Source: Amphiscolops sp. MND2022 (lineage: Eukaryota). From it: DNA of 64,000 nucleotides. The stretch is taken from contig OZ076409.1 of NCBI GenBank assembly GCA_964187785.1, positions 35,588,001-35,652,000 on the forward strand, read 5' to 3'. Made by a program: the position numbers and the translations under genes. This document shows, in pieces, positions 9,915-61,130 of this stretch; position 1 is the stretch's first letter, and each line of letters opens with the position of its first letter. The notes under the pieces were generated by a model. It was not told the origin of the DNA and made no database searches. It saw only the letters and a list, made by a program, of their open reading frames with translations.

Positions 9915-10198
9915 TCACAAAAACGGTTCTCTAATTTCTTCACCGGAGCTGAAACTATTTTCCTCCCCTTTTATTTCACGCGTTCGAGCTGCAATGAAAA
10001 ATTCTTCCTTCGTATTCAGAAGCGGTTTTCCCAGAGTTTCAAGCCCATATAACATTATGAACAGAGAGGAGACGACCCCAAAAGCTGCAAATATTAAGTA
10101 TGGGGCGCAGTTGTAAGGACCCACATCTATGTAGGTCACAAAGGGCGCCAGAATAGTAGCACTCGATGCAGCAGATGAACACAATAGAAGTCCAGTGC
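9915..10198 (-). CDS. SLC22/organic cation transporter-like MFS gene, last coding exon (exon 4)
   Basis: Encodes GTGLLLCSSAASSATILAPF...LETLGKPLL...*, matching TM11-TM12 and the PETKGxPL-type C-terminal motif. It joins in frame (phase 1) to ELYPTVLR of exon 3 through the acceptor cttcgAG|gc. Confidence 0.85.
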
Positions 10199-10753
10199 CT
10201 CGAAGCCAGCATTCGAGTAAATTTTATGCTTCTATAAAAAAATTACGCTATTTTCCAAAACAGGAAGCTAACGTCTATTAGAAAAGTTTTTTGTTTGAGC
10301 GAACTTTTTTCACACATTGCACTGTGATTATGTTCGAATTAAATGTCTTTTTTTGTGAATCAAAAAAGGAAGCTGTTGATTTTCCAATCAAAATTGTGTA
10401 ACTTGATCAGGAAAAATAGTGTGGACAAAATTCATACCTGGATGCTAAACTGTCACCCAGCGAAAAAATTTGAAATTGAAGGTTTCTGGCTTACTTTTGA
10501 GTCTTTTTCGTATATTTTCAAAAAAATCGATGGAAGGGAAAACAGAGAAGAAACAGAAACTGTGAAAAGGATTCTATAGATTTTCTGAAATGAAAAAAGA
10601 ACAAGAGATGCAATGGTATTGCGATATTTTGTATAATCTGCTATTACGTTTTTAGAAAAAAATCAGAACCTTTTCAGCATCTATTAACTAGCTCATGCAA
10701 AGATACATATAAAGTTCCAAAATGACAGTTCGAAAAAAAATTTCCATTGCCTG

Positions 10754-11129
10754 TGTTGTGTACACAATATGATTGGATTAAAACAAACTAATCTCAAGGC
10801 GCTATGGCGAAATAGGTTAGTGCATTCGGTTCCTATTCCAAAGGTCCGGAGTTCGATTCCCGGAATCTGCGGAACCTTTGGTAAAAATACTAAAATACCG
10901 TTTTCGACTAAAATAATTTTTGAAATAATATATACGAAACTTTGACCTTGCTATCTCGAAACTTTAATTAATGTTTGATAATATTTGTAAACAACCTTTG
11001 TGCCTTTGTCAGTTTCGTTAATTTATACAGCTTTATCATTGTTCTATTGTGTTGCGTTCGATAAAACAGAAAGGTTCGAAATATACCATTCATTTCTTAA
11101 AGTCTTTTGCAAAACGATCTGTAGAATTG
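10754..11129 (+). repeat. BEL-1 5' LTR (portion shared with the 3' LTR; the true LTR probably extends further right)
   Basis: 376 bp match to 19702-20075, with 3 substitutions and a 2-bp indel by eye. It starts with TG and is preceded by GCCTG. Confidence 0.92.
10798..10870 (+). promoter_or_regulatory. tRNA-derived cassette with Pol III A and B boxes inside the 5' LTR
   Basis: GGCGCTA TG GCGAAATAGGTTAGTGC A TTCGG TTCCTAT TCCAA AGGTC CGGAG TTCGATT CCCGG AATCTGC is 73 nt with tRNA spacing. A box TGGCGAAATAGG, B box GTTCGATTCC. The acceptor stem does not pair. Confidence 0.75.
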
Positions 11130-12111
11130 CTCCGAGACTACAGCTATTTTAAGGTGGCCATAGAGAGGCATATACATTACACAGATTTTTATCGAGGCTA
11201 CGGTTGAAGTGGACAAATCAGAGACTGGACAAGCTTTAACTCCTGAACTCGTGACGTCTGACCCCAAGACATGTGCGACCCTTGATGTGACCCAAGCGAA
11301 GAATCAACTGCCCGAACAACGTCTTCCACCCCTCCTATCGCCCGCCTCAGACGTCAGCTGGGTGAAATCATCCACAGAACGGGTTCAAATTAGTGAGCAT
11401 GTTCCACCTCAGGGAGACGAATCCTCCCCGCAGAAGTAAACGAGATTAAACCAGATATTATACGCCCAAAAGCAGACCGAATCGAATGAACAACTATCAT
11501 TGCTGATTCAGCCGAAGGTTCGACGAAATCTTAGCAACTTTCTCGACACCACTAGAACTTCCCCCACTGATGAGCTACCCCCATACAACCCACAGAAGAT
11601 CCCCTGGTTGTTAGTAACCGAAAAAACTCGAAACACATCGCGGTTCTTCAGGATTTAAAATTCCTGAAAAGTTCTTGATGAAAACTTTAAACCCAGAGGC
11701 TTTATTATTTTAATTATTGTGCTAATCTTCGAGATAGCAAAGTTTGTCAAATTCGGGACACTTTTGTGTTATGTAAAACTTCCAGTTTCTTATGAAATTT
11801 GGAAAGGGTGATTGATGAAAAAACCCATAGTAACACTTTCCTAAAAGGCACACAAAAATTGACACCCTTCTTTCAAACAGAACCCAAGAAAGGGTTCAAT
11901 TCGTAATTATCAACTGAAACTCGGCATAAAATTTAGAAAACTGAGCGCTAATTGCATTTTGCTTCTTGTAAAAAAAACTTTGTCCCGAATTTTCCATGTA
12001 ATCTTGTTCCAATTTGAAAAATTGTTGGATCCGCCTTTTGATAATCCGTGTAGCTGAAAAAAAAAATCACAAAAAATATCAGTTTTGCGCGAAGTGTTGC
12101 GAAAAAAACGC

Positions 12112-12714
12112 ATGGTTTTCATATTGGCTGCTAGTTCTTTGCACCATGCAATAGAAACGTTAACTCCCGATGAAAAAGAACGTTATGAAAGCAAAATTGT
12201 CTCTATCCCGGGCCTAAGTCTCAATCCGAACACGAAAAATCCCAAGAAGATTGTTCAAAATTTAAAAGATCTGAAAGATAAAAAAGACATTGTGATTTGG
12301 CATGATGTTTTGAACAATAGTGTTTCGAAACATGATAGCAACCATTTACGTGCGTTATCAGTGTTGGATCTAATTAAAACATTGAAAAATCTTCAAGACA
12401 AGTTTTGTGCTCTGGTGTATTGCCAACGTTACCGCAACCCGTACATTTTCGAAGAATTGAAAGTTTTGCAAACTGATCATGACATCAAAGTGTTTAGTAT
12501 CGTCAAAGATTTTATATCCGTGAAAAAACGAAAGGATCCCGAGATTCTTAAACAATTCAAGGCGTTGCATCAGAGCCCAGAGCTTGAGCTGAAAAATTTG
12601 GATTTCGTTCTTCGTAAAGAGAATCAACTCTCTGCAATAACCGATAAAAGCCGACCCAAACGGCCAAGTAAGCGTGCCCGGAACGCTGCTAAGAGAGCCG
12701 CTGCCTCCTTTTAG
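12112..12714 (+). CDS. Accessory 200-aa ORF in the BEL-1 leader, SGNH/GDSL hydrolase-like with a basic C-terminal tail
   Basis: Uninterrupted ATG-to-TAG ORF. Motif order and spacing resemble SGNH blocks: FILAASSL (I), SIPGL (II), IVIWHDVLNNS (III), KALHQS (V). It ends KSRPKRPSKRARNAAKRAAASF. The fold call is from motif recognition only. Confidence 0.7.
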   Translation: MVFILAASSLHHAIETLTPDEKERYESKIVSIPGLSLNPNTKNPKKIVQNLKDLKDKKDIVIWHDVLNNSVSKHDSNHLRALSVLDLIKTLKNLQDKFCALVYCQRYRNPYIFEELKVLQTDHDIKVFSIVKDFISVKKRKDPEILKQFKALHQSPELELKNLDFVLRKENQLSAITDKSRPKRPSKRARNAAKRAAASF

Positions 12715-12727
12715 TCTCAGTTGACAA

Positions 12728-12740
12728 CCCCCCCCCCCCC
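12728..12740 (+). repeat. C13 homopolymer just after the accessory ORF stop
   Basis: GACAA followed by 13 C and TTCCAG. Confidence 0.9.
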
Positions 12741-13137
12741 TTCCAGCTGTCGAGACAGTGTCCGAACTTCACTGATCGGTTGAAGTTTCTTCAGCTCTTC
12801 CTCCTTCTTTCAGAGTTGTGTCCAGTCTTGACTGACTGGTTGATACTCTGAAAGATCGTTTCGTCCCTCACCCGCACCACCGTCAACTGAGACCGCGTTG
12901 AGTCGACGCGACTTTGAGTTTATCGTGTTCCGTCCTCGTAGTCTGTGACTACTTTTAACTTAAAACAAAAAAATTGCCAGTTTCTTTGTAGAAGCACTGT
13001 ACAAACACAGTGTTGTCACCGATAAACACCGTTCTTTCTTCTACCGAACTTTTTCTTGAACTGTGTCCAAACTTAATTGTTTGGTTGACGTCTGAAAAAG
13101 TACAAACGCGCACCGATCCTCAAATTTGGCTACGGTC

Positions 13138-16100
13138 ATGTCTGACCCCGTTCACGAAAAGGTGCAAAAGTTGTATGACAGTCGCGCGAAAGCCGAAGCC
13201 GACCTGAACAGGTATCAAAAAGACGTGACAGAAGCAGTAAACAATGCCGATAGACGAGTCCGCGTCGAACGGTTGGTCACTTCTTGCGAAGAGGCTATGA
13301 CAAAAGCTTTCGCTAAGAACGAACAGCTACTCGAGCTTGCCAAGAAAACCAACGACCCGGCAACTGTCACAGCAGACTTAGAAAAATGGTTGAACGTCAC
13401 GAGCATACAAAATGATGGAATTTTGAGAAGCGCAAGGGAATATATCGATCAATGTCCCAAAACAGATAATTCTTCGCAAACTTCAGTCAAAGCTGCCACC
13501 GTGAAGACTAAGTCTAGCAAAATTTCAAGCAGCAAAGCGTCGAAAACTCCAAGTCAGCGCCAACGAGACTTGCTTATTGCCAAACACAAGCGAGAAGAAG
13601 TAGAAAGACAAAACGAAGCTGCTTTACGACTAGCTAAACAAAAGCAAGAGCTGGAGCTTGAACAACTGCAAGAAGAGAACCGCAAACGACTTGCAGAGGC
13701 GCATCTAGTTGAACTTGAACTTCAAGAAGACCCATCTGAAGCTAACGAAGATGCTCATGGGATTCTTTCGCGTTTAAGCAGAACAACAGACGCTAGTGAA
13801 ACACGGCGAGTTAGCGACTGGGTTAACAACTCGCCAATCGTTACCACGACTCAACATGAGACGGTAACAGCGGTGACTGCAAGTCTAGCTACTTCTGCCT
13901 CAAATACTACCGCTTTGATCCCATCTCAGCAACCTCCGGTTAATGTCTCTCGGCCGATTTTCGCACCAAGTGATCCCAATGAAACAAACGTGGCAGTACA
14001 ACTACCAACAACTACCGTTCCATCAATGAGTTTAAATCACACTCCTGCGATACAAACTCAGACTCCTCCATTGACAGCGCAAAACTTGGGGAATATCGGA
14101 CCTTCAACATCAGCTGTCATTGTACAACAACAAGTTCAACCGACAATCATCCCGACCCAAACTGGAAGTTTCAATGCGCAAGTTTTGCCGCCACAAACGA
14201 CAACACGGATGCCCACGTTCACAATGCCGGTGAACCACATCCTCCCAAACTTGTCCGCATGGACCTTCCCGAACCCGACTGTTACCACCGCACCGATTGT
14301 AACAACGATTCCGCCCCCGACACAGCCGACGGCACCTACTTTCATGCTGTTTGCTCACGCGCCAACCTATGCTGTTCCAACCGTACCCGTTACCGCTGGT
14401 GGAACTGTTTATTATATACCCCCAGCAACCGTTACAACGCCAATTGTGTACAGTACAACACAACCGACGACTTCCCTTAGTCCAACAGCCGCTACATTTG
14501 TGCCACCCGGAACGTTAACGACTATGCAACCAAGCACAACCGGATTCACGATACAAGATCTTGCATTGTTGTTAGCTTCAACGAAGAAAGACCATGTTCC
14601 AGGGTGGAAACTAGCACAATATAACGGCGACCCGATTCAATGGCATGAATGGTTCGGCCAGTTTAAAAGTGCTAAAGACTCAGTACCACTAACAGACGAC
14701 GTCAAGTTAACATACCTCAAGACTCTTGTAACTGGCAAAGCAAAGACGGCTATCGCTGAATTTGCTTACTGCGGAGCAATGTATAGAGACGCCCTAAAGA
14801 CACTAGAACGAAAATTTGGACAGCCGCAGGCTGTAGTAACTGCTTATCTGGATAAGCTGGCAAGCTTTCCTCCTGTCAAGATGCACAACAGTGAGAGCAT
14901 CATCAGTTACTCAGCAATACTTTGTTCTCTAGTCGGGGTTTTCCGATCTCTAAACTACGTCCAAGACCTGTCAAGCGCATCATTGCTTGGACAAGCCGTT
15001 CAAAAGCTTCCGCCAAACATGAAAGAAGCATGGTCACTGCACACAGTGAGGCGAACTTTGGACAGACCGACGCTCATTGATTTCAATGACTGGCTCAAAG
15101 ACAAAGCCGAAGCGCATGAGCGCATGAAGTCTCTGCCCAACAAAGCGAAACCTGAAGAAAGTAACAACGTGACTGTAATTAAGACTAAAACTGCTTCCAA
15201 GGTTTTCGCAACGACGACTTCTAGTCAACAAAGTGCCAGCGCCAAAGTTAAGAATGACAAACCGCCTAACACTTGTGCTGCTTGTAAAGAAAAACATCCT
15301 TTGTGGAGATGTCCAGCATTCAGAGGAAAAACACCCACAGAGAGAGCAAGAATTGTAGCTGACAATAAGCTTTGCTTTTCATGCTTCAACCAAAATCACA
15401 CGTTTCGCCAGTGCCCCCAACCCCGCAAGTGTACGAAAGATGGATGCGGGAGTTCACACAACACTTTCTTGCACGGAGCTGACAGGATTTTTGCCAAGAA
15501 AGTCACTAGCGTGAACAAGGACAAAACTGAAACATCTGGTTGTATTGGAACATCAATGAACAACGAAAGATCAGACGAGAGCTCAGGCATGCCTTCCATT
15601 GCCGATGTCAAAGGCCTATTACAAGTAACGGAAGTTGAACTTCACTCGAACGGCAAAAGCGAAAAAGTCCTAGCACTGTGTGATTCTGCCTGCAGCCATT
15701 CCTGGATCTCAGCGAATCTGGCAACGAAGTTGAACGTACACGGCACCCCGACCAAGCTTACTGTCCATGGCATAAATTCCAACCAAGTCGTAGACACGCA
15801 ACTGGTGGAGCTTAAGTTGACACCCGTTCATTCGGGTGGCTCTTGCTCTCCCTTTGTTGTTAAACCGTACGTCAGGGAAGACCTCAAAGTCGGAACTGAC
15901 ACCATCGATGTCGAACTTTTGAAAACAAAGTACCCCCATTTGCAACCAATCTCTTTGAAAAGGTACAGCTACGCCGATGTTGAAATGATACTAGGTCAGG
16001 ATGTTTTCCACTCAATCCGCCCGCTGGAGTATTTTGATTCCGACCGCAAAACTGCTCCAGTTGCCGTTCGTTTACCGTTGGGTTGGGTTTTGAGTGGACC

Positions 16101-19100
16101 GCTCCCCTCGTCGTCAGGTCTCTATTCAACCTGTTTTAAAGCTGTTGCTTCCAACAAGGAATTGGACTCCGAACTTGCCGACCAACTCCGAAGCTGGTAC
16201 GATATCGAATCGTATGGAGCGTACAAACAAGTAGATTCGCGTTCCGCAGCCGATGCGAGAGCGTTGGAAATACTTGAAGAAACGACTTACCACGATGGTA
16301 ACCGATACCATGTGGGAATGTTGTGGACCGAAGCCGACAGTAGTTTGCCGAATAACTACTTTTCCGCGCTCGTGCAGCTGAAGTCGTTAGAACGTCGCCT
16401 CGACAAAGATCCTGAATTGAAACAACTTTATGCCAAAACAATTCACGACGACTTCGACAAAGGTTACATCACCAAAGTTGACAAAAGCGACTGTTTCAAA
16501 TTAGACCAACCCCGCGAGTGGTACCTGCCACACCATCCTGTAGTGCACCCGCACAAACCTGGCAAAGTTCGCAGAGTATTGAATGGCGCAGCAAGGTTCC
16601 AGGGCCAATCTTTGAACAACGCCTTGTTAACCGGACCGGACTTGCTACAAAGTTTGATACACATACTGATCCGCTTTCGTCAACACAAGTACGCCGTCTC
16701 TGCCGATATCGAAGGTATGTTTCTTCAAGTTGGAGTCATACCAAAAGATCAACCTTCACTTCGTTTTCTGTGGCGGGAAGACCCAGCTGCAGAAATCGCT
16801 GTGTATCAGTACGTCCGGCACATCTTCGGGTCGAAGGACTCACCAACATGTGCGAACTACGCACTGAAGCGTACTGGTAGCGATAACCAAGACGCTTTCC
16901 CTGAAGCAGCGAAAAGCGTTCATCGCAATTTTTACATGGACGACTACTTGGAATCAAGCCCTACGGTCGAAGAAGCCAGTAACAAAGCAAAGGACTTGGT
17001 GGCACTGCTTGCAAAAGGTGGCTTTAATCTAACTAAGTTTGTTTCCAACATTAACCACCTTTCAGCCGAACTGCAACAAAGCGGCGAACTAGCACCGACC
17101 GATGAGAAGGTGATTCCGAAACCAGACGAGTCCTCACATGTCTTGGGACTTAAATGGAATCATGCCTGCGACACCCTCGTAGTAAGTCGGGGAACGAGCC
17201 CTGTTACGAACAAGAAACTTACTCAACGAAAGGTACTGAGCGTAGTTTCAGCTGTCTACGATCCCATTGGACTCGTTGCTCCATTTACCGTCCAATCAAG
17301 ACTGTTGTTGAAAGACATCTGGAGATTAAGTGGTCAACAGTGGGATGACGATCTGCCAGACGAAATCGTAACTAAGTTCAACGAATGGAACAAGGAACTG
17401 CCAACTTTGAGCGAAATTCAAATCCCACGGAGCTTTTTCGAAGAGCGAGTTGAAACCTTGGAGCTGCATATGTTCTGTGACAGCTCTCAAGATGTCTTCA
17501 GCGCCGTCGCTTTTCTACGAGGAAAAGTTGCCACCACGATTGGTTCCACAACAGAGTTAGCTTTCGTCTTTGGGAAAGCCAGAGTACCACCCATGAAAGC
17601 CCTTACGATCCCGAAGCTTGAACTACAAGCCTCGTTGTTTGCTGCACGACTCCGAAAAGAAATTGAAAATGCGCTAACGGTCAGAGTTGCTAACACTTTC
17701 ATGTGGACGGACAGCACGACGGTCCTTCAGTGGCTCCATTCTTTAGAGAAGCAACCGGTGTTTGTAACCAACCGCGTGGCCGAAATCCTGGAACTAACAA
17801 CAGTGGATGAATGGAATTATGTTAAATCAAGTGACAACCCCGCTGATGCAGGAACGCGTGGTCTTTCAGCCAACTCACTTCGTGACAGTCCTTGGCTCAA
17901 AGGTCCTTCATTCTTGCGAACACACGACTGGCCGTTCAAACCACCAAAAGAAGTTGAGGTCAAATTGAAAACGAAAAAGTTGGACACTTCCCTTTCGGAA
18001 CAAGAAACTTCTGAATTTTTGACAGCTTTAAGTGCAACTGTGATCGGCATCGCGACAACTTTCGAGTGGCAGAAGTACAGCTCGTACGAGAAACTTCTGC
18101 GCGTTGTTGCTTACATTTTGCGCCTACTGCCAAAAAACGAAGGTTACCGTTCCGACTCCGGTTTAGTAACTGACCCAAATGAAATGCGAAATGCTGACTT
18201 GAGACTTTTCTATCTCATCCAACAAGAGTCATTTCCCGTCGAACTGAAGTGCTTGCTAAAAAAATCCCCCGGCAGCAACTCTTCTAAATTTTCCCAATTC
18301 TCCCCTTTCATTGGGCCTCAAGGCCTACAGCGAGCAACCGGTCGGACCAAACAACTAACAGTTTCCAACTTCGACGCAAAACACCCTATTTTACTGGACA
18401 GCCGTCACCCCGCCGTACGCTTGTACTTAGAGCAGCTCCATGAAACGCATTGCCATCAGGGTGTCGACTACATGAGGGCGTTGGTGCAGCAACAGTTCGC
18501 CATCGTCAAGCTTAGAACCGCCCTGAGGTCAATTGTCTCCAAATGTGTCACTTGCCGCAAACGTCGAGCGGAAACTCTTAATCCGATAATGTCCGACCTT
18601 CCTCGGGAAAGACTAGCATTTAAAGAGCGTCCATTTACGAACACTGGAATTGACTATTTTGGTCCGTTTTACGTAGCTGTGAAAAGATCAACCGAAAAAC
18701 GATGGGGATTCCTATTCACTTGCTTAACAACAAGAGCTGTCCATTTTGAAGTTGTCCCGTCAATGGACACTAGTAGCTGTGTTATGGGGATCGAAAGATT
18801 TGCTGCCTGTCGGGGCGTCCCATCTGTTTTGTGGTCTGACAACGGAACCAATTTCATCGCCAGTGAAAAGGAGTTGCTACAAAACGTGTCAGCGTGGAAT
18901 CAACATATTCTGTCTGAAGCTTTGGTCAAAAAACGGATCCACTGGAAGTTCAATCCTCCCAGTGCTCCCCACCATGGAGGTGTCTGGGAACGAATTGTCA
19001 GGAGCTTCAAACACGTTTTTTACGCAATTCTTGGAAACCGTCGCCTAATCGACGAGATATTAACAACTACCTTTTGTCTTGTAGAACAGAGTCTCAATTC

Positions 19101-19542
19101 CCGCCCACTGGTGCCCGTTAGCTCCGACGCTACGGATTTTGACGCCTTGACACCCAACCACTTCCTCTTGGGAACCGCGGGTTCCACAATGCCATCGCAC
19201 CAAAGAGCCGACGTAGACCACAGAAAACGCTACGCACGCGCGCAAGCGTACTCAGATGCAATTTGGGACCGTTGGCTCAAAGACTACGTTCCGTCGCTTA
19301 ACCGCCGTTCGAAGTGGTCAACCCAACCAGATCGAGATCACAAGACCGGTGACCTTGTCTGGATTGTGGAGCCTACGAGTCCACGAGGACATTACCCACT
19401 TGCACGTGTGGTCAAGCTGAACTACGGTACCGACGCTGTCGCTCGTTCTGCGGAACTGAAAACCGCAACAGGAAACCTTGTTCGACCCGTTGTCAAACTT
19501 GCACCCGTTCTCCCGTCCCCCGATTCCCCCAATCTTACTTAA
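13138..19542 (+). CDS. BEL/Pao Gag-Pol polyprotein (Gag, three Cys-His knuckles, protease, RT, RNase H/peptidase A17, integrase, DUF5641)
   Basis: First ATG at 13138 in ORF 13126-19542. Motifs: YNGDPIQWHEWFGQF (DUF1759); CAACKEKHPLWRC, CFSCFNQNHTFRQC, CTKDGCGSSHNTFLH; LCDSACSHSW (protease); ADIEGMF and YMDD (RT); FCDSS and PKLEL; H-H-C-C zinc finger, GIDYFGP, SDNGTNF, GGVWER (integrase); WLKDYVPSL. Confidence 0.97.
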   Translation: MSDPVHEKVQKLYDSRAKAEADLNRYQKDVTEAVNNADRRVRVERLVTSCEEAMTKAFAKNEQLLELAKKTNDPATVTADLEKWLNVTSIQNDGILRSAREYIDQCPKTDNSSQTSVKAATVKTKSSKISSSKASKTPSQRQRDLLIAKHKREEVERQNEAALRLAKQKQELELEQLQEENRKRLAEAHLVELELQEDPSEANEDAHGILSRLSRTTDASETRRVSDWVNNSPIVTTTQHETVTAVTASLATSASNTTALIPSQQPPVNVSRPIFAPSDPNETNVAVQLPTTTVPSMSLNHTPAIQTQTPPLTAQNLGNIGPSTSAVIVQQQVQPTIIPTQTGSFNAQVLPPQTTTRMPTFTMPVNHILPNLSAWTFPNPTVTTAPIVTTIPPPTQPTAPTFMLFAHAPTYAVPTVPVTAGGTVYYIPPATVTTPIVYSTTQPTTSLSPTAATFVPPGTLTTMQPSTTGFTIQDLALLLASTKKDHVPGWKLAQYNGDPIQWHEWFGQFKSAKDSVPLTDDVKLTYLKTLVTGKAKTAIAEFAYCGAMYRDALKTLERKFGQPQAVVTAYLDKLASFPPVKMHNSESIISYSAILCSLVGVFRSLNYVQDLSSASLLGQAVQKLPPNMKEAWSLHTVRRTLDRPTLIDFNDWLKDKAEAHERMKSLPNKAKPEESNNVTVIKTKTASKVFATTTSSQQSASAKVKNDKPPNTCAACKEKHPLWRCPAFRGKTPTERARIVADNKLCFSCFNQNHTFRQCPQPRKCTKDGCGSSHNTFLHGADRIFAKKVTSVNKDKTETSGCIGTSMNNERSDESSGMPSIADVKGLLQVTEVELHSNGKSEKVLALCDSACSHSWISANLATKLNVHGTPTKLTVHGINSNQVVDTQLVELKLTPVHSGGSCSPFVVKPYVREDLKVGTDTIDVELLKTKYPHLQPISLKRYSYADVEMILGQDVFHSIRPLEYFDSDRKTAPVAVRLPLGWVLSGPLPSSSGLYSTCFKAVASNKELDSELADQLRSWYDIESYGAYKQVDSRSAADARALEILEETTYHDGNRYHVGMLWTEADSSLPNNYFSALVQLKSLERRLDKDPELKQLYAKTIHDDFDKGYITKVDKSDCFKLDQPREWYLPHHPVVHPHKPGKVRRVLNGAARFQGQSLNNALLTGPDLLQSLIHILIRFRQHKYAVSADIEGMFLQVGVIPKDQPSLRFLWREDPAAEIAVYQYVRHIFGSKDSPTCANYALKRTGSDNQDAFPEAAKSVHRNFYMDDYLESSPTVEEASNKAKDLVALLAKGGFNLTKFVSNINHLSAELQQSGELAPTDEKVIPKPDESSHVLGLKWNHACDTLVVSRGTSPVTNKKLTQRKVLSVVSAVYDPIGLVAPFTVQSRLLLKDIWRLSGQQWDDDLPDEIVTKFNEWNKELPTLSEIQIPRSFFEERVETLELHMFCDSSQDVFSAVAFLRGKVATTIGSTTELAFVFGKARVPPMKALTIPKLELQASLFAARLRKEIENALTVRVANTFMWTDSTTVLQWLHSLEKQPVFVTNRVAEILELTTVDEWNYVKSSDNPADAGTRGLSANSLRDSPWLKGPSFLRTHDWPFKPPKEVEVKLKTKKLDTSLSEQETSEFLTALSATVIGIATTFEWQKYSSYEKLLRVVAYILRLLPKNEGYRSDSGLVTDPNEMRNADLRLFYLIQQESFPVELKCLLKKSPGSNSSKFSQFSPFIGPQGLQRATGRTKQLTVSNFDAKHPILLDSRHPAVRLYLEQLHETHCHQGVDYMRALVQQQFAIVKLRTALRSIVSKCVTCRKRRAETLNPIMSDLPRERLAFKERPFTNTGIDYFGPFYVAVKRSTEKRWGFLFTCLTTRAVHFEVVPSMDTSSCVMGIERFAACRGVPSVLWSDNGTNFIASEKELLQNVSAWNQHILSEALVKKRIHWKFNPPSAPHHGGVWERIVRSFKHVFYAILGNRRLIDEILTTTFCLVEQSLNSRPLVPVSSDATDFDALTPNHFLLGTAGSTMPSHQRADVDHRKRYARAQAYSDAIWDRWLKDYVPSLNRRSKWSTQPDRDHKTGDLVWIVEPTSPRGHYPLARVVKLNYGTDAVARSAELKTATGNLVRPVVKLAPVLPSPDSPNLT

Positions 19543-19689
19543 TCTTTAACCTTCTTCGTTTTTGTTTTCTATTGTAATCATGCCAAAAATGAATAAAATG
19601 TAACATGTACATCAAAAACCCATGTAAACCGTTTGCAAAAAAAGTTTCCGTTTCAATTCAAATGTTTTTTTTTGCATTCACACCTTCTT

Positions 19690-19701
19690 GGGCCCGGAGG
19701 A
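19690..19701 (+). promoter_or_regulatory. BEL-1 polypurine tract
   Basis: GGGCCCGGAGGA directly before the TG of the 3' LTR, a BEL-type GC-interrupted PPT. Confidence 0.8.
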
Positions 19702-20075
19702 TGTTGTGTACACAATATGATTGGATTAAAACAAACTAATCTCAAGGCGCTATGGCAAAATAGGTTAGTGCGTTCGGTTCCTATTCCAAAGGTCCGGAGT
19801 TCGATTCCCGGAATCTGCGGAACCTTTGGTAAAAATACTAAAATACCGTTTTCGACTAAAATACTTTTTGAAATAATATATACGAAACTTTGACCTTGCT
19901 ATCTCGAAACTTTAATTTGTTTGATAATATTTGTAAACAACCTTTGTGCCTTTGTCAGTTTCGTTAATTTATACAGCTTTATCATTGTTCTATTGTGTTG
20001 CGTTCGATAAAACAGAAAGGTTCGAAATATACCATTCATTTCTTAAAGTCTTTTGCAAAACGATCTGTAGAATTG
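19702..20075 (+). repeat. BEL-1 3' LTR, truncated at its 3' end
   Basis: Matches 10754-11129, then diverges after GTAGAATTG with no terminal CA and no GCCTG target-site copy. Confidence 0.92.
19746..19818 (+). promoter_or_regulatory. tRNA-derived Pol III-type cassette inside the 3' LTR
   Basis: Second copy of 10798-10870 with two substitutions. GGTTAGTGCGTTCGG here is closer to the tRNA-Asn D-arm/anticodon-stem sequence. Confidence 0.75.
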
Positions 20076-20270
20076 TCCTCGCACTAGGACCTTTCTCAGA
20101 AAATAAAAAACATTAGGCAAGCCAGCGAGAATTTTGACCTTGCTGAGAAAAAAATGCGCGTAGCTATATTACTTTTCATTTCATTCGTAGGATTTTAGGG
20201 ACAAAGTTTTCCTATCGTGAAGGTTTTCAAATAATCGTGAAGTCGTTCGGATTTGATAACCAATACTTGC

Positions 20271-21030
20271 CTCGGAGCACTGTAGGGTAAAGTTCAGGTG
20301 TGTAGGTGAACAAAAGGTCAAATGCAGCGGTGACCATTCCCTTTCCCACCATGGCAAATGCGATCTGAAACACGCCCCCTGCTATGGGCGCTGTGAACGG
20401 CAAAGTGAAGCATGCTGCTGAGGAGAGTAAAAGGCAAACATAAAAGGCCACTTTCCGACCATACTTGTCCATGGCGAATGCAACGAGCCATACTGGAAAC
20501 TCACAAATGGCTAACAAAATGGAATTGATATACGGGCTTCCACTGATGCCACCAACTCCAAAGGTCAACCCAAAGTACACCAAAGATACGGTGAACCATG
20601 AGCATATTTGACCTCCTGACAGCATGAAGGCGGGAAAAGTCCGGAAAAGGTCAAGTATGGATGCTGTGTCATCTAGCTTCGAGCCTGGTCTCTTTTTGAT
20701 CTCTAGGTCATCCAGGGGCTCCGGTGATTTCATTGATAACACCATTCCAGTCGATGTCTCAGTCTTTTCACTCTTTGCTGATCCGTTTGCTGACAGCCTT
20801 ATCGTTGATGGGTCGTTTCCGTTGCGTTCAGCGATTAAGCACAAAACCTTTTCAGCTTCGCGGAATCGTTTTCGGGAGTTCAGCCACATTGGGCTTTCAG
20901 GGATAAAAACAGCGAATATAAACCAAATTGGCACAGGCACTGCTGACATAATCATGATCTGCAACCTCCAGGAGGACCTGAACAAGTATCCGATGACAGC
21001 CCCGATTATTTCCCCAATAGCGTAAATAAC
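20271..21030 (-). CDS. SLC22-like transporter exon 3 (TM5-TM10)
   Basis: Encodes VIYAIGEIIGAVIGYLFRSSWRLQ...IPESPMWL...WFTVSLVYFGL...MDKYGRK...YTPELYPTVLR. Acceptor cttttaAG|GTT, donor CGAG|GCAAGT. Confidence 0.92.
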
Positions 21031-21471
21031 CTTAAAAGCGAACCTCTGCGATTAATCTACTGTTCAACATAGAAAAATTTCGTGATTCCGATGTAGTTGA
21101 TAATTCGCAAACACCACAATCACGCACGGGTGGAAGCTTCTAATTTTTATGAAACAAATAAAATAATTGAAAAGCCATAACTTCTAGAGTAAGCTTACCA
21201 AAAGTGTACGCTTTTTTTCTTGCTTTTATCCGATTTTAACTTGTTTGGCTAGTATCAAACTAATCAAAGAAATCGTTTTTGACCTATCGGCCATGCGGTC
21301 ATTTTGTATCTCACTATTTTGTTAGGATTCCAAATTATTCACGATACGAAAGACCCTTTTAATCTCAAAATCTTTTTGTGAGAAGGGAAAAGTTTTGACC
21401 GAAGGAAGTTTCCAGATGAAAAATAATTGTGAGTTGTCTTCCTGGATATAGTGAATCAGAAGTTTGCTTTC

Positions 21472-21875
21472 CATTGCTCCCATGGACAACTGGGCGAGGT
21501 ATTCTTTTTTCACTGTTTCAGCCATTAGAATGTAAATGGGTCCGCAGAATCCTCCATAAAACAGCCCATTCAAAAAGCGGAAACAGGTATAAAACCAAAT
21601 GTTTGGAGCAAAAGCCGTTGTTGCGCTGAAAGCAGCAAATAAAGGACAGCAAATTAGAAAAATTGTTTTCCGGCCAAACCGATCGCTTGCGCGGCCAGAC
21701 AGAATTAAGGAAATCATGTTCGCGAACCAGAAAACAGAATTTGAAAGCGAAGACATCACTTGGTTACTTCCACAAGACAAATCAAACTCTGCTACGGTCG
21801 ATTTGACGTCTTGCTTATAAACATATAACTGGCAATCTTCGATGCATTTTTTGTCGAAGCTTTGATTGGACAAAA
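21472..21875 (-). CDS. SLC22-like transporter exon 2 (extracellular loop to TM4)
   Basis: Encodes KCIEDCQLYVY...STVAEFDLSC...SGRASDRFGRK (MFS motif A)...RFLNG...LMAETV. Acceptor gatgcAG|TT; an alternative acceptor would start the exon at 21900. The 3' end is inferred at ATG|GAAAGC. Confidence 0.88.
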
Positions 21876-22864
21876 CTGCATCAGTGCGTTGCAGTGATAG
21901 CTAGGTATACAATACTTAACAAGTTTCCTGCATTAGGTGCCTAAATTATAATCGCCTTGGCATGGAAAATTAATTTATACCAAAAAACCACCATAATTTT
22001 ATATTGACGAACTGGTTAAACTAAATTACCTTTAAACGCCTAAAAAGCTTCATAACGTCAATGAGCCCATAAAGTTTTCATTTTTAAGTCTTCCTTATCC
22101 TGAAAGGTTCCTTTTTGGCTTTTTTTGTTACTGTAAAATTTCAGTTCATATTGTTTATCACAAATTGGGCGGAACTCGCATCTAACCAATGTCAAGTTTC
22201 TGTATCTTTTCAAATTGAACTATAATAGTGCTGTTCTAGACAAAACGTTTAAATCGATGAAAAATGTGCTTTTTTGGAGGAGTTAATGTTATAGCCGATT
22301 TTTATTCGATCTTCGTCTGACGTTCATCCGAATTGTCTTACGTGTTCCCAAGAAAAGTATGGGTTTCAGCCAAGACCAGTATCTTTTCTATTTGAGCAAT
22401 AATGAAAGAGTTGTCTTTTATAAAACAAATTGAGCTACGAACTATATTTTGTCTAGCGAGGACGAAACCAGGGGACGTTTTTTGAACTGCCAGTATGGAA
22501 TTTATTAAACATATTGGCATGAGCAAGTTTTCAGATCTATAAAAATTTTTCAGTCAGTGTTTTTGTTACAAAAAGTGCCCGGACATCACAGTTACAAGTT
22601 TTTGACCTCATACTGAATGGTTGATTTTTAAAGAAGTTTTGCGAGAAAAATATTTGGCGGAAGAGTTTCATAAGTACCCAAATCTTCCTAAACTAAATAA
22701 GTTGATGAACTTGAGTTGCACCTCTAAATTGTATAAGTTATTCAAGTTTTGCAAACAAATTACGAACTATGTTCGCTGTAAAATGCAAGCTCTGTAATTT
22801 GTCAGCTCGAACAGGGCAACGAATACGAATTTAAATATTCATTCATTCATTCATTACTCGACTT

Positions 22865-22937
22865 GGCAGTAACTTGACCCGGTGGTTAAGATGCGTGGCT
22901 ACCCAAGGGAAGCTCGTAGGTTCGAATCCCACTCGGA
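22865..22937 (+). repeat. tRNA-derived (Leu/Ser-like) SINE-type head preceded by (ATTC)4
   Basis: A box TGACCCGGTGGTTAAG and T arm GTAGG-TTCGAAT-CCCAC (B box GGTTCGAATCC). No pairing acceptor stem. The microsatellite is at 22837-22855. Confidence 0.6.
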
Positions 22938-23589
22938 ACCAAAAATTTTTGTCGTTGCAAAGTTTGGCGGTATCGACAGTACGACTTTTTCAGCACTGTG
23001 CGATTTCTCAAGTTTTTCCTTTATTGTTCGTTTTTACCCTGTTTCTACTTAGAAAGCAAGTTTTTAAGTTTTTACAGCCTGAAAAAAATCTGTAGATTTT
23101 TCGGGCACAATTCGACTTTCTAGAGAAGATTTTCCCATCATTATGGGTTCATTGTTTCCAGTTAGAGAAAAAGGGGTTCGACTCCGAAGAGCGCTTTTGT
23201 TTATTCGGCACTCTGGAATCTACGAGGTTTTCCTAAAAGCCACCCTGAAACATTCATTAGACTTTGCACTTTTTGGGCCTTGAGCCGGGCGCCGACTTAG
23301 GGACGTGTCCGTTTTGGTAGTTTAGTGGTTAGGGTGAGATGCTCTGTTTAGTGAAAGAGACCAAAGGGTTCCCATTTTGGATTTTTCCAGCACCGTGCGA
23401 ATAATCCCGTTTTTTTGTGAACTTTGAAATTTTTGAGATCATTTTTTGAACAATTTTTTCACAATTTTCAGTTTTTTGAGATTTTTTTTAAAACGGAAAA
23501 CAGTTTTCCCGATCCTTGAGAAGACCTTTTTGGATATTTTTCTGGTCCTTCGGAACTGATGAGAGATATTTCTCAGTATTGTGGAAAAA

Positions 23590-24565
23590 CAATGTATCAG
23601 TTTTTTATTTTCCGCCCATATTTCATATGGGAAAGGAAAATATTTAAATCAAACGGGTTTTTTTACAAAATTTGCCAAGAATTATTGTTTACCTAATATG
23701 AAGAAGTACATTCACAGAATTCAACTGACATAAATTGAGTTCCATGCGATATGTATTTGTAAAGATTTTTGGACTTTTTTGGGAATGACGGAAATGACCC
23801 CATAATGACCCAAAAATGTTCAAAACATTTCAAAAAAAATCACAAAAATTCAAAACTTTCCCAATTTTCACTGTTTTCATGCATTTTTTGCCATTTTTCG
23901 ATAAACATCGTCGATTAGAATGTTCAAAACGTTCAACAAGGCACGAATTCGTTGTCCAATAGTATTCTGAAGAGATAAATGCGGTTTTTTAAAAGAAAAA
24001 TTACCAAAAAAATGACAAAAATTCCAAAATTTTTCGACTTTTAACGTTTTAATGCAATTTTTGTCATTTTTTCGATAAACATCGTGGATTAGAATGTTGA
24101 AAACGTTCAACAAGGCACGAACTCGTTGTCCAATAGTATTCTTTAAGGAGATAAATGCGTTTTTTCAAAAAGAAAAATTACCCCAAAAATGATAAAAAAA
24201 TTCCAAAATTTTTCGACTTTTAACGTTTTTATGCAATTTTTGTCAAATTTTCGATTAGACTTCGTGGATTAGAATGTTGAAAACGCTCAGCGTGACAGGA
24301 ATGGCAGGAATTCGTTGTCCAGTATGCTTTTCCGAAGAGATAATGGCTGTTTTCTAAATGAAAAATATATCAATTGAAACCGAAAATGACAAAAAACCCA
24401 AAATTTTCCAATTTTCAAAGTTTTTATGCAATTTTTGTCAAATTTTCGACAGACTTCGTAGATTGGAATGTTGAAAAGAGTCAACAAGGAACAAATTTGT
24501 TGTCCAGTAGTCTTTTTCGAAGAGATTTGGGGCGGAAAATATCCCGCTGGTCCGCGGGCGTCTTG
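23590..24565 (+). mobile_element. Putative non-autonomous Helitron-like element with about 4 internal 174-194-bp tandem units
   Basis: The anchor TTAGAATGTT(C/G)AAAACG recurs near 23915, 24089, 24269 and 24463. The element ends with a CCCGC-TGGTCC-GCGGG hairpin (24543-24558) and CTTG|T. The 5' end is undefined. Confidence 0.55.
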
Positions 24566-25285
24566 TTGTATAAAAATATCAGTATTTAAATGACTCTTAA
24601 CGAATTTGCTGCCCCGGTATTTTTGATGGTTTCAATTTAAGAACCCGTTTGCAAACGTGAGAGGTTCCGTCTCTGGATGATTTCGCCACTGTGTGATGTT
24701 TTTTGAAAAAAAGTTCTTGAAAAAAAATCAAAATTAGGTTTTTGCGGTTTTTAGTTTGTCCTTTTAACCCTGAAATGCCCCCCGATGAAAAATGTCTGCT
24801 GTAACTCTGTACGAGACATTTAGCAGTTCCACTGAGTCTTTCGTTGTTATATACATTATATCGGATTATTTACTGACGTTCCAAGATCGTTTACCGGTTA
24901 ATTGGTGATTATCATTTACAATTGGTAAATGAAATTCGGGAGCTTACAAAAAATAAACTAGGTGTAAAGCTTGAAAGCTTCAGCTAAATTCTGAACTGAA
25001 GCTATTCTAAGCTTAGCATTTTAATCGCTAAGTTTGCAAATTACACAAATTTGGAAGACATCCGTTGAAAACTGGAATATTTCAAATAAACGACAAATTT
25101 CAAAGGATCGTTTCCAAAAATTTTGGTTCCACTTCATTTGAAGAAGGAACAAATCATATTACTGCCACTCGAACTTCAACTCGAATTACAGCCAGAAAAA
25201 AAATCAGGTATGGATGAGAAACGAACCCCGACATCTCACAAAGTGGGTATAGCAGTGTCCGGACACTTGCAACTAGATCACTTTA

Positions 25286-25401
25286 GCTGTTTTGGTATTG
25301 GTATGGCTATTTTGGTATTGACTATTTTGGCATATTGGATATTATGGCATTTGTTGTTTTGACCTTGGCTGTTTTGACTTTGGTTATTTTGTCCTGCCAC
25401 C
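25286..25401 (+). repeat. About 15-bp degenerate tandem repeats (GCTATTTTGGTATTG-like), probably subterminal repeats of a DNA transposon
   Basis: Seven to eight (G/A)CT(A/G)TTTTGG/GAC units ending GTCCTGCCACC. Confidence 0.6.
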
Positions 25402-25404
25402 TAT

Positions 25405-25772
25405 GGGAACATTTGCTACTATGTAGAACATTTGCTACTAGGCCATTTCCTACTACGACATTTTCTACAACATGCAAAATGTTACTAGGACATTTGCTAC
25501 AATTGAAGTTCGACTAAGCTATTACTGCTAACTGGCGTATTGGGTGCTACTGCAGAGTGAGTAGTGAAACCAATTTGAGACTTTAAAAAATGAAGTTTGC
25601 TGGAATTTGGCACAACATTGGTCAAAATTGCCGGTTAATCGAGTCGTTATAAGTGGATTTGCTTGTGTTTTCAGATTCAAAATCAGAAAATTTGACTAAC
25701 CGTCCCATATGTAACAGCTTATATCCCATAGCTAAAATTAGTAGCAAATAGACTCTAGTAGCAAATGTCCTG
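25405..25772. mobile_element. MITE-like element with inverted ends and subterminal ACATTTGCTACTA repeats
   Basis: The left end GGGAACATTTGCTACTA with about 5 tandem variants faces the right end TAGTAGCAAATGTCCTG, its approximate reverse complement. Confidence 0.45.
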
Positions 25773-25837
25773 TAACTGTAATAGCCAACTGGGTTACCGA
25801 ACGTGATAGCTGCCAAAAGTTCTCCGAGTATGGCACG

Positions 25838-25891
25838 AAGTGGGAAAATGGTATTGGGAGGTTATAACCTCCCAATACCATTTTCCCACTT
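25838..25891. repeat. Perfect 54-bp palindrome with no spacer
   Basis: AAGTGGGAAAATGGTATTGGGAGGTTA|TAACCTCCCAATACCATTTTCCCACTT; the 27-bp arms are exact reverse complements. Confidence 0.95.
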
Positions 25892-26265
25892 AGTTAAATT
25901 TCCTCCCTAATACGATTTCATCGAAATTTTTGTTAAACTCTATCATGAAAACTATTTCAAAAGATTCACGGCCTTTTTGGGCTGCCACTTTTCGATGATG
26001 ATTGCAATTTGTATCGAATGTTCTAATGAAACATGCAAAAAACTTAAAACACAGTGAAACGTACTCCTCTCAATGCCTCAGCGGTAAATCACAGAGAAAG
26101 TTTGTACATTCTATTGCACGTAACTTTTATAGAGTTTTTGTTTACTTTTTAGTTTACCATTGTGCTTTCAGATGAACTTCAAAACTATCCGTGGAGCGTA
26201 TAACGCTTTGATAATTGCATATGGAAACAGTTCGCTTGGACGTTTAGTAGAAGACAGCAACACAC

Positions 26266-26428
26266 TGCTTTTGTTATCTGAACAATAGAAGGGGACTTCA
26301 ATTCCAGTGAAAACCGGCGTAACGGCCTGCCATCCAGCGAAAATGTAGGCAACAAAAACCATAACAATTATCAATAATTGCGCTCTGCCCAAAGTTCCTG
26401 CTTTTTCGAAAGCTTCTTGAAATTCCAT
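26266..26428 (-). CDS. SLC22-like transporter exon 1 (start, TM1)
   Basis: MEFQEAFEKAGTLGRAQLLII...VFTGIEVPFYC resembles the M-x-F-(D/E)-x3-(E/K)-x-G-x2-GRxQ start of SLC22 proteins. The donor is taken as AGCA|GTGTGT (phase 1); an alternative donor is at 26169. Confidence 0.75.
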
Positions 26429-54601: not shown

Positions 54602-54789
54602 ACTGTCTGTTTGGAAGCTGAAGACGAGGTACAACTGATATTGTGGTAGTTTGGACTGCCATATTTGCGTCTGCCACATATCGCTATCATCTCGTGGTAG
54701 TTTGGACGTTTGCGTCTGCCATACATCTTCATCATCGTTGTATTTTGGACGTTATTCATTGGACTTCGTGTTACGAGGGAGTCAGTGTG

Positions 54790-57700
54790 ATGAATACTCA
54801 GACTCAGATCGACTTTGATGTTTCATGGTACACGGATACCAAGCACTCTAAAGACCTACGAAAATCAACGGATCTTGTCAAATGGAGAATTCATGCAGAA
54901 GTTTTACAAAAAACAATTTTGGATTTGAATGTCGTTGTGAAAGAATTCGAAAAAGGAACACAATGGCTGGAAGAAAGAAGACTCGGTGATTTGGGAAAAT
55001 TGTACCATGAGTACCGCGATCTCAGAGCTAGAGTGACGGACTTGCACCAAATTGGGAACGAGATGCTGAAGGCCAAAGCGGTAGATGAACAACGACGTAT
55101 GCAGTCAACCGTGTATGTGCTACTGGGCGACGCCTTGAAAAAATGGACCACAACGAACACTTGATTGTCATGGCTCGGCCCAGTTTATACGCACCTAAAG
55201 CAGAAGTCTTCTTGCGTAACCTATTGTAAACAGCAAGATAAATTCAATCAACTCATCGTTGAACTGAAGAAGACTACTTCGCAAATAGAAGACCAAATTG
55301 AAAATGGAGATCGGTCGGCGAAAATACGGACGTCAGTACACAGGTTCATTAACACCGTGGAAGAAGTCAAGGCTGTTTGTCGCTACCAAAAGAGCCTTTT
55401 AAGCGAGTCGGGAGCAAACCAACGTCAAAATTTATTCGAGGGAGATGAAGTCAGTTGGATGGCAGCAACCCAGAAATGGCTACACTATTTGGAGGCCATA
55501 GAAAAGGAAAGTGCCTTTTCAGACAATTTTCAAGACCCCGTTGAAACTACTGAAACATCACTACTGATGACAAATAATGAGACAAGTGAGACTGAAGATG
55601 GGAAGCAAGTAGAGAACCAGAACAACGTGGAAGGTAATGTTGCTTCTGCTAACACTCAGTAAAGGCGCCTCAACAACCTCCAAAAGAAAAACCAAATATT
55701 ACTGGCACAAGCGTGGTCTCACCTCAGAAAAACCTTTCCAGAGAAGACGACCCCGAGGATGTCCTTGGAGCACTAAAAGTGAGCCGTGGTTCCACCGCAT
55801 CGTCACGCTCCTCTAGACGACGTTTGCAATTGGAAGCTGAAATCGCCGAGGATGAATCTCGTGCCAAAATTGTAAGAAAGGAGCAAGAGTTAGAGCTGCG
55901 ACGCAAGAAGAGAGAAATAAAACTGGAGGCCCAAAAGGAGGAAATGGAGCTTGCCGAAATGAGGCGAGAGGAGAAACTATCACTGAAGTTGAAGAAAATG
56001 GAAATGATGGATCGAACATCTTCAGGAAGTAGCGTGTTTAGCATCTGTGAGTCGCTTCGCTGTCAGAACGTCAAAACTAGCACATGGGTCAATTCACCAG
56101 AGAATAAATTTGGCACTCACGTGGAGACCAAGCTTGGGGAAGAACTTCAGGCTGCTGAAAATAGCGAGAGACCGTGCTCATCGAGACGAGCTGATGCTAA
56201 ACTGGAGCAATCAATAGAGCATATTACACCCATGGCAACTACCGATGTCAAGCCGAAGAGGGAACTAAAGTTCGGTTCAAATGTGTTTGTGCCTGGCAAT
56301 GCATCCCCTGGTGGTGCCAAAACCCCAGCACCAAAGCAAGTGTTTGGATCAACGATGCAATCAACCCCAACACAGACAGTTTTGCCGTCCGCGTCAGTGC
56401 CAATGAAACTGCCAAAGATGGTCTTAGAAAATTATTCGGGCGACCCTCTGGAATGGCCTGAATGGTCCGGTCAGTTTATCGCAACCATTGATCAATCGAG
56501 AGTAGCAGACAGTGTCAAGATGAACTATTTGAAGACACTGGTCACTGGTAAGGCAAAAGCAGCAATTGAGGGCATGGGATACTCGGGTCAGATGTACCAT
56601 GTTGCTTGGCAGACTCTGGCGCATGATTTCGGGCGACCTGAGCTGGTTGTGAATGCGCAACTAAGAAGGATTCATGCCTACCTTTTCATCAAACCGCATG
56701 ATTCAACAGAAATTGTGAAGTATTCTCAAGTGGTGTCCGGATGTGTCAACGTGCTCACCCAATTTGGATATGAAATAGACATTGCCTCCAAATCAGTGCT
56801 GAACAGTGCCGTCAAAAAGCTGCCAAATGAACTCAAGAATAAGTGGACGACGTATTTGCAACGATACGACATGAGTTATAAGAATATGCGAGTTTTCAGT
56901 GCATGGCTCAAGAATATTGCGCAAGTACAAGAGAACATACGCTTGCAGTTTGGCTCTAGTGGTGACAAAGCGAAGTCCAACTTCACAAAAGACAAGACGA
57001 GGAATACGAGTTTTGCTGCGACAAGTGATTCTGGTTCATCCACGAAGGCGCAATGCCCTCTAAAAGATGGTGAACACAAAATCTGGCAATGTGATGCGTT
57101 CAAGAAGAGAAGTTGTCGGAACGACATGATGCCGTCAAAAAATGCAATTTGTGCTTCTCTTGTCTGAGCTCTGGCCACAAGATTGGTCAGTGTCAAGTCA
57201 ATCGAACGTGTGGAAAAAATGGGTGTAGCAAGCGGCATAACAGACTCTTGCACAGTGACGATTACAAACCCAAGCTTCAAAAAGAAACTAGTAACAGCCT
57301 TGAGAATACAACCAATGCCGATGCGGTTATGACAGCAAACGCGTGTAGTAGAAGTCTGCAGATTGTTCCAATCACGCTCTCGAAAGGAGCCACCTCAATT
57401 GAAACGATGGCCATTTGTGACACTGGATCGACGCTCTCCTTTGTGGACAAAGACATTAAAAACCGGTTGGGTGTTCAAGGGAATGCTATCACACTCAATA
57501 TCGCTGGAATCAACGGAACAAAGGAAATGAACAGCGAAAGGGTGAGGATCAATGTCTCAACTACGAATTTGTCGCAAGCAGTGAAGTTCCATGTTCATCC
57601 TTCGATGTATCTGGGAAACAAATCTTATGATTACAATGATCTAAAGCGGAAGTACAGCCATTTAGACGTTTTGCCAGACAACAATGTGGATCTGAAGAAT

Positions 57701-60700: not shown

Positions 60701-61130
60701 TCTAGAAGCACTGACGCCGAATCACTTTCTGTTGGGACGACCTGTGGTGGCAGAACCGCTGATGCCAGATTCTGTCAGATACGTGGACTGTCGAAAAATG
60801 TACAAGGTGGCTGAAGCGTACAATCAAATGATCTGGAACAGATGGGCGAAAGAATATCTTCCCAAGTGGAACCTGTGAACGAAATGGGCAAATGATGACG
60901 AACGTGTCCTCAAAGTTGGAGATCTGGTTTGGTTGATTGATGAGTCAGTTCGACGCCATGAAAACAAGATGGCGCGTGTGATCGAAGTGTTTCCGGGAGC
61001 TGATGGCGTCATACGATCAGCACTGATCAAGACAAGCGATGGAGCCCTTCGAAGACCCGCTGTGAAGTTGGCGCCAGTTTTCAATGAGTGTTTTCGAGAT
61101 GAAAACAGGGCCGGCGATGTTGGCGCCTGA
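54790..61130 (+). pseudogene. BEL-2 gag-pol with at least 7 disabling lesions
   Basis: Motifs: YSGDPLEWPEWSGQF, CFSCLSSGHKIGQC, AICDTGS, ADIEAMF, YMDD, FSDAS, PKLEL, GVDYFGP, SDNGTNF, GGIWER. Stops at 55162, 58481, 58861 and 60876; frameshifts near 55650, 57115, 58735 and 59840. The frame ends 13 nt inside the 3' LTR. Confidence 0.93.

Follow-up and report, generated by a model that had tools for sequence, protein, structure and literature searches.

The window, by which is meant the whole stretch of 64,000 nucleotides that was analyzed, carries on its minus strand a four-exon gene of the SLC22 type, the exons of which were mapped with intronless paralogs as probes. Exon 1 (26266–26428, with the ATG at 26428) was located by tblastn with the intronless paralogs C4, C6, and C7b; its 3′ boundary, AGCA|GTGTGT, falls in a poorly conserved loop and is provisional, as is intron 1 (21876–26265, GT-AG, about 4.4 kb), for which more than one GT-AG solution fits. 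Exon 2 (21472–21875), which matches the solved structures of SLC22A3, A11, A12, and A6 in phmmer searches, ends in ...AETVKKEYLAQLSMGAM and is followed by intron 2 (21031–21471), a phase 0 intron of 441 nt with the ends GAAAGC...TTTTAAG (GA-AG). Exon 3 (20271–21030; 253 codons plus one nucleotide, VIYAIGEIIG...YPTVLR(G)) is separated by the lineage-specific intron 3 (10199–20270; GC-AG, GAG|GCAAGT...TTCGAG|GC) from exon 4 (9915–10198), which has its stop codon, TGA, at 9917–9915. The spliced product of the four exons has 536 amino acids and zero stops and is colinear with the 542-residue intronless paralog C4.

The SLC22 assignment made in the earlier note is upheld by both exon 2 and exon 3, whose phmmer matches comprise solved chains of SLC22A3, A5, A6, A11, A12, and A1; in addition, the exon 3 open reading frame, P0121, carries precomputed PF00083/PF07690 (Sugar_tr/MFS_1) domains, as do the paralogs. 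The family is large, with more than 25 paralogs in this genome, and among named proteins the paralogs come closest to an SLC22A15-like protein of Symsagittifera roscoffensis (44–47% identity), vertebrate matches being near 30%. Neither that protein nor its DNA occurs in the window's genome, which is therefore not that of S. roscoffensis, and this one family tentatively points to an acoel-like animal. In searches for transcript-derived proteins, exon 3 matched genomic ORF calls only, and exon 2 gave no matches. ARAGORN calls no tRNA genes in the 9–27-kb part of the window, and three stretches that look tRNA-like by eye (19780–19850, 22880–22960, and 23300–23400), where ARAGORN likewise finds no tRNA, are probably pieces of tRNA-derived repeats.

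On the minus strand, exon 2 ends GCT GAA ACA GTG AAA AAA GAA TAC CTC GCC CAG TTG TCC ATG GGA GCA ATG, the final ATG ending at 21472 and the peptide reading ...LSMGAM. The letters directly 3′ of the exon end are GAAAGCAAACTTCTG, and intron 2 begins with GAAAGCAAAC after the ATG, its GA lying at 21471–21470; it ends ...CGCTTTTAAG|GTT ATT TAC GCT ATT GGG, with AG at 21032–21031 and exon 3 starting at 21030. The two boundaries and the GA-AG reading had been proposed previously from the sequence, and re-reading gave the same coordinates and strand. The earlier comparison with human OCT1 was replaced by a test of the join on paralogs, in which the peptides of exons 2 and 3 served as queries against the 1.07-Gb genome that holds the window. 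At least eight intronless paralogs (C4:12.9 Mb, C6:35.7 Mb, C12:29.7 Mb, C7:44.5 Mb, two on C13, C11:13.4 Mb, and C3:59.7 Mb) run uninterrupted through this region, and the number of codons between their flanking alignments is exactly that of a direct GAM-VIYAIG join; the 441 nt, which are single copy in the genome, are therefore a precise phase 0 interruption. A scan of all donor and acceptor pairs within 45 nt of the alignment ends, made with five intronless paralogs and without a dinucleotide prior, ranked the GA..AG join first, tied with the one-base slides GG..AA and AA..GG that give the same mRNA.

Use of a canonical junction in place of GA-AG, either a weak TT|GTCCAT donor joined to the GAG acceptor at 21044 or a GT farther downstream with a gain of at least 24 residues, is very improbable. 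Both options are in frame, exon 3 is preceded by open frame (SQRFAFK), and read-through past exon 2 continues for 49 further codons before a stop; as had been claimed, the nearest in-phase GT donor is TCG|GTCAAA downstream, which adds 24 residues, and upstream the only GTs are GTTGTC and GTCCAT. However, every GT-AG or GC-AG solution in the scan was at least 60 BLOSUM units below the GA-AG join, with the best of them 60 units lower, and the paralogs with canonical donors splice exactly at the codon boundary of intron 2. The GTCCAT donor with its GAG acceptor exists as a formal option, but its earlier rejection stands since it would exchange the conserved SMGAM for FAFK; the S[M/T]G[A/T][M/Q] codons, which lie downstream of that donor, are kept in more than 10 relatives, with no exception among those examined. 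The chance that the GA reflects an assembly or sequencing error, position 21470 being truly T, is negligible. The public runs that cover the locus are four from one sample, of a kind not on record and none of them listed as RNA; their contigs span 20200–21900 collinearly and without joints, and they agree with the GA at 21471/21470 despite 3–5 other single-nucleotide differences from the window in 1.7 kb, so that the check proposed in the earlier note favors the assembled letters. The two exonic differences, at 20446 and 21001, are both synonymous. A U12-type intron was considered and rejected, the donor being GAAAGCAA as against RTATCCTT and the branch site TCCTTAAC, 10–15 nt from the 3′ end, being without a match. 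A candidate branch-point motif, ATTAAT (21051–21056, minus strand), fits YTNAY.

The homologous junction can be followed in paralogs and in a second, related genome (ERZ26859043 in ENA), which was found through ORF-level protein matches. Where the window gene has ATG|GAAAGC, its closest paralog in its own genome (C7a, at C7:35.88 Mb) has LSMGTQ CAA|GTAAGT...TTTCAG|GTC (VIYAVG; 433 nt), and the ortholog of that paralog in the second genome (L054) has CAG|GTTAGC; another paralog, C5, has CAG|GTGTCA...GAAAG|. Two further genes of the second genome, on contigs ctg53790 and ctg83541, read ATG|GCAAGCAAATTTCTG...CAGAAATTTTCTTCAAG| (L053, donor GCAAGC) and ATG|GCAAGTAAATTTCC...GAGAAATTTGCTTGAAG| (L055, donor GCAAGT), and two members of a cluster on C12 of the window's genome read ATG|GAAGGC...AAGCCAAAAAG| (C12b) and CAG|GGAGGC (C12d). 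Some of the paralog loci are incomplete, and the C12b intron sequence contains a 151-nt gap. Thus, at the homologous position of intron 2, the +2 base is T, C, A, or G among orthologs and paralogs.

In a maximum-likelihood tree, the window gene, C12a–c, L053, L055, and L056 form one clade (SH-aLRT 100), the sister of which is C7a with L054 (98), followed by C5, and the intronless C4/C3b/C6 fall outside these groups. The intron position is common to two species and at least six paralogs, and this common codon boundary, taken with the tree, indicates that intron 2 predates the split of the two species. The introns of the window gene, L053, and L055 (441, 595, and 1240 nt) can be aligned at their ends alone, over 15–20 nt on the 5′ side and ∼20 nt on the 3′ side, and their interiors are unalignable, at saturated synonymous divergence. 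Exon 2 of L056, L067, L068, and L069 was not found within 10 kb upstream. The S. roscoffensis locus L066 (OY783234.1:10901288-10923263) is without an intron across this position; its gene model, P0013, treats 350 nt within an unbroken open frame of 479 codons as "introns" with the ends TG..TA and GT..GC, and this intron model is probably an annotation artefact. The introns at the codon boundary of intron 2 in C5 (L005/C5:42023677-42024100) and in C7c (C7:17.36 Mb), a member of a distant clade, have direct repeats on either side (AGGTGTCA, 8 nt, and CAGGTA, 6 nt, respectively), and these two may have been inserted independently at a single proto-splice site.

Intron 3 is missing from all relatives examined, including C7a, C4, L053, L054, and L055, and is flanked by a 7-nt direct repeat, CGAGGCA, that is single copy in the spliced reading. 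It has the appearance of an insertion that duplicated its target site, with the duplication providing the AG of the acceptor as well as G+1/C+2 of the donor, and a transposon origin is plausible; the duplication of a target AG|GC that provides both splice sites would be a simple reason for the GN starts of new introns in this genome. Within intron 3, on the plus strand and antisense to the gene, lies a young BEL/Pao LTR retrotransposon (10754–20075) of 9.3 kb, with LTRs at 10754–11129 and 19702–20075 that are 99–100% identical and a 2138-residue gag-pol ORF at 13126–19542; the derived boundaries of this element show no clear target-site duplication. The intron also contains a dispersed, SINE- or MITE-like repeat of about 300 nt (∼10249–10551), for which a first look gave more than 2700 candidates genome-wide at 75–80% identity. 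A second BEL/Pao-like element, broken up into several ORFs (DUF1759, Peptidase_A17, and integrase), occupies 54643–60878 on the plus strand.

The main rival to a functional GA-AG intron is recent inactivation, in which a GT or GC donor has mutated to GA, the intron is retained, and the gene has become a young, unprocessed pseudogene, still free of stops. The GA could indeed be derived, given the GT of the closest paralog and of its ortholog and the GC of the nearest relatives from the second genome; the family is large, such that the loss of one copy could be tolerated, and the retrotransposon insertion in intron 3 is young. Nevertheless, we consider inactivation unlikely, although the comparative constraint is compatible with a very recent C>A or T>A change at the donor. 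The four exons are open across 536 codons, both exonic differences in the public contigs are silent, and every contig compared (four runs, one sample) has the GA. The window gene differs from L053/L055 with a pS of 0.81, which is saturated, and a pN of 0.23, whereas its pN to the outgroup C7a, 0.293, is close to those of L053 (0.281) and L055 (0.261); by these distances, it is without rate acceleration relative to L053/L055. Also, the independent paralog C12b has GA at the homologous intron, and many other members of the family need GA, GG, or GC donors.

The extent of this donor variety was assessed from the well-resolved junctions of SLC22 paralogs. GA donors are found in the window gene, in C12b and C12d at residue 131, in C6b, and in C12b at residue 194, and GG donors in three C12 copies at residue 404, in three at the small exon after WRLQ, and in C12d at residue 194. 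GC is the donor of intron 3 in the window gene and of introns in C11a, C11b, C3b (two), L053, and L055, and about eight donors are GT. Counted by independent position, roughly half are non-GT, and all have G+1 and a 3′ AG; it should be noted that some of the C12 copies behind the GA and GG examples contain stops and are possible pseudogenes. These copies belong to a tandem cluster at C12:13.22–13.33 Mb (L038–L041, L020, L021, and L025), which has at least four SLC22 copies of at least seven exons each, with GA donors recurring at residues 131 and 194 and GG donors after WRLQ and at residue 404. The earlier note had suggested a relaxed +2 position with the consensus GNAAGY. The first part is supported by the presence of all four bases at a single intron, but the consensus is too narrow, as GAGAGT, GAATGA, GGATGG, and GCATCC also occur. 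Intron 2 has A at +3, and exon 2 ends in TG before the GA donor; other GA donors of the family are preceded by AG.

In the copies that were read, the U1 and U6 snRNA genes, inspection of which had been recommended as a further check, hold no change that would compensate for a GA donor. The genome has more than 20 U1 genes, and in the 12 copies that were read, position 7, the partner of +2, is A throughout. The 5′ end is the canonical AUACUUACCUG in 8 of the 12, whereas 4 (L032, L033, L034, and the L036/L037 type) differ elsewhere in the 5′ end. The variant ends in L032, L033, and L034 are ATATTTAAACCTG, ATTCTTACCTG, and ATACTTACTTG, with the +2-pairing base unchanged, and L036 and L037 are non-canonical at position 11 (ATACTTACCTT). 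The ACAGAGA and AGC context of U6 is canonical; a U at U1 position 7 and an altered U6 ACAGAGA are thus absent from the 12 U1 copies and from U6. Such snRNA variants have been proposed as a mechanism for G[ACG]-AG introns and do not define them. Five pairs with U1 remain available to the intron 2 donor, at G−1, G+1, A+3, A+4, and G+5.

The two ends of intron 2 are complementary, which the earlier note had missed. A 5′ arm at +2 to +15 (21457–21470, AAAGCAAACTTCTG) faces a 3′ arm at −18 to −5 (21035–21048, CAGAGGTTCGCTTT), both on the minus strand and the latter just downstream of the candidate branch-point motif, and the 14 positions comprise 12 Watson-Crick pairs, one G-U pair, and one mismatch. 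The helix is without a 6-nt exact seed and for this reason was missed by the repeat search. For the first and last 30 nt, RNAduplex gives −17.2 kcal/mol, within the 0.5% tail of a null in which the 5′ end of one family intron is paired with the 3′ end of another (−7.5 ± 3.2), and the mean for 24 family introns is −13.6, introns with GT and non-GT donors being alike. When the whole intron is folded with RNAfold, the helix closes the minimum free energy structure as well as the centroid (z = −2.0). Among the window gene, L053, L055, and C12b, 49 of 56 cells pair in register as opposed to 16–30 of 56 in slid registers, and at 8 of the 14 positions both sides have changed with the pair kept (for example, C:G versus T:A at +10 and A:T versus T:A at +7/+8); none of 2000 column shuffles reached the observed pairing. 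The evidence for covariation from these alignments is strong but, with only four related sequences, not overwhelming. The persistence of the helix in the window gene, with its own compensated C:G pair at +10, also argues against the recent loss of the gene. Since the helix covers +2 to +6, the region bound by U1 and U6, it would, if it persisted, compete with their pairing and must open at some stage.

It might be supposed that the helix is the decaying terminal inverted repeat of a transposon that founded the intron and has no role in splicing, with the GA tolerated for other reasons. Terminal inverted repeats are present at intron 2, transposon-derived introns that carry them are documented (PMC11282704), a repeat resembling a target-site duplication occurs at intron 3, and direct repeats flank the introns of C5 and C7c. 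The covariation makes such an origin improbable for the helix of intron 2, as a neutral remnant is unlikely to stay paired at saturated divergence when 8 of 14 positions have changed on both sides and the interior can no longer be aligned. Moreover, intron 2 is older than the species split; it is found once in its genome and at the same position in two species, unlike introners or MITEs, which have many copies and recent, species-specific positions. It has no recognizable target-site duplication, ATG|GAAAGC and TAAG|GTTATT having only GG in common.

The reading that we favor, and consider likely, is that intron 2 is functional as a GA-AG intron, that it belongs to an old class under structural constraint, and that its lineage accepts whichever base stands at +2. 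On this reading, an intact SLC22 gene, for an organic ion transporter, would hold an inherited, phase 0 spliceosomal intron that is older than the separation of the window animal and the second species. Since that split, +2 would have drifted among T, C, A, and G, with G+1, A+3, mostly G+5, and the 3′ AG retained, and the helix of 13–14 bp, formed by +2 to +15 with −18 to −5, would have been maintained by compensatory substitutions. Canonical U1 and U6 point to excision by the ordinary U2-type spliceosome, in which case the spliced product would read ...GGAGCAATG|GTTATTTAC... The helix may bring the two splice sites together and so offset the lost pair between U1 and +2, which would make +2 nearly neutral in this lineage. 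With GT, GC, GA, or GG starts among sister genes and the second species, and with ends that keep pairing, the odd GA start appears to be tolerated and not broken. The boundaries of intron 2, its homology, the variability of +2, the covariation of the helix, the integrity of the gene, and the GA in the public data are direct observations, whereas splicing of the GA form and the role of the helix are inferred. A wider proposal, which is put forward tentatively, is that there is an acoel-like class of introns with a covarying, intron-specific end helix and an effectively free +2 position, and that this class is fed by insertions that duplicate AG|GN.

Few signals in eukaryotes are as conserved as the GU with which introns begin, and the rare lineages that relax it are natural experiments on the selection and proofreading of 5′ splice sites. 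The present genes, which are under purifying selection, supply a clean comparative series in which the paralogs and the two species together show all four +2 bases, and a helix in which pairing is conserved but sequence is not suggests the hypothesis that end-to-end pairing replaces the +2 contact. There is also a practical consequence, in that gene finders that insist on GT/GC-AG introns would mis-annotate a sizeable share of genes here; the P0013 model illustrates the odd structures that can result. Among the papers available to the literature search, there was no relevant report of non-canonical or introner-type introns in acoels. What is new is the lineage, the occurrence of four +2 bases at a single homologous intron, and the covarying end-to-end helix.

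Introns of the type G[A/G/C]-AG have been published in Oikopleura dioica and Eurytemora affinis (Frey and Pucker 2020, PMC7072748; Robertson 2017, as cited in PMC7072748). Like intron 2, these keep G+1 and the AG acceptor, vary at +2, and have A at +3 after GA; as in the window's genome, many genes are affected, and the major spliceosome is believed to carry out their removal. However, their GA donors follow a highly conserved exonic AG (PMC7072748), whereas intron 2 follows TG, and the U1 C8>U isoform proposed for Eurytemora (PMC7072748) has no matching change in the 12 U1 copies read here. The Oikopleura and Eurytemora cases are backed by RNA-seq and, in the accounts consulted, come with no report of a conserved end-to-end helix; intron 2 has such a helix and is known from genomic sequence alone, in a lineage that is acoel-like and neither copepod nor tunicate.

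The non-canonical introns of Fritillaria borealis, which bear terminal inverted repeats (Henriet et al. 2019, as described in PMC11282704; Soo et al. 2026, PMC13326754), share with the window's genome the inverted-repeat intron ends, frequent non-GT donors, a link to transposons, and conserved core snRNAs. Fritillaria introns have mostly AG-AC or AG-AT ends and species-specific positions, and U2AF is duplicated in that animal, whereas intron 2 keeps G..AG, is found in two species and several paralogs, is single copy, and has a covarying helix. With respect to introner elements and transposon-derived introns (Gozashti et al. 2022, as summarized in PMC11282704), the two introns differ: intron 3 fits, being lineage-specific with a 7-nt duplication that gives AG and G+1/C+2, but intron 2 is old, single copy, and without a recognizable target-site duplication.

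Two other systems bear on how a GA donor might be used. A GA-AG intron of human FGFR is spliced efficiently by the major spliceosome in a manner that, according to the summary in PMC7072748, depends on a canonical GT six nucleotides upstream. At the corresponding position exon 2 reads TCCATG|; a GT (GTCCAT) is present 9 nt upstream and is only a possible anchor for U1. In the nonconventional introns of Euglena, the intron ends base-pair and bring the exons together, and the borders depart from GT-AG. These introns are without conserved G..AG borders and perhaps do not use the standard spliceosome. Intron 2 therefore resembles them in the pairing of its ends but differs in having borders that are canonical except at +2.
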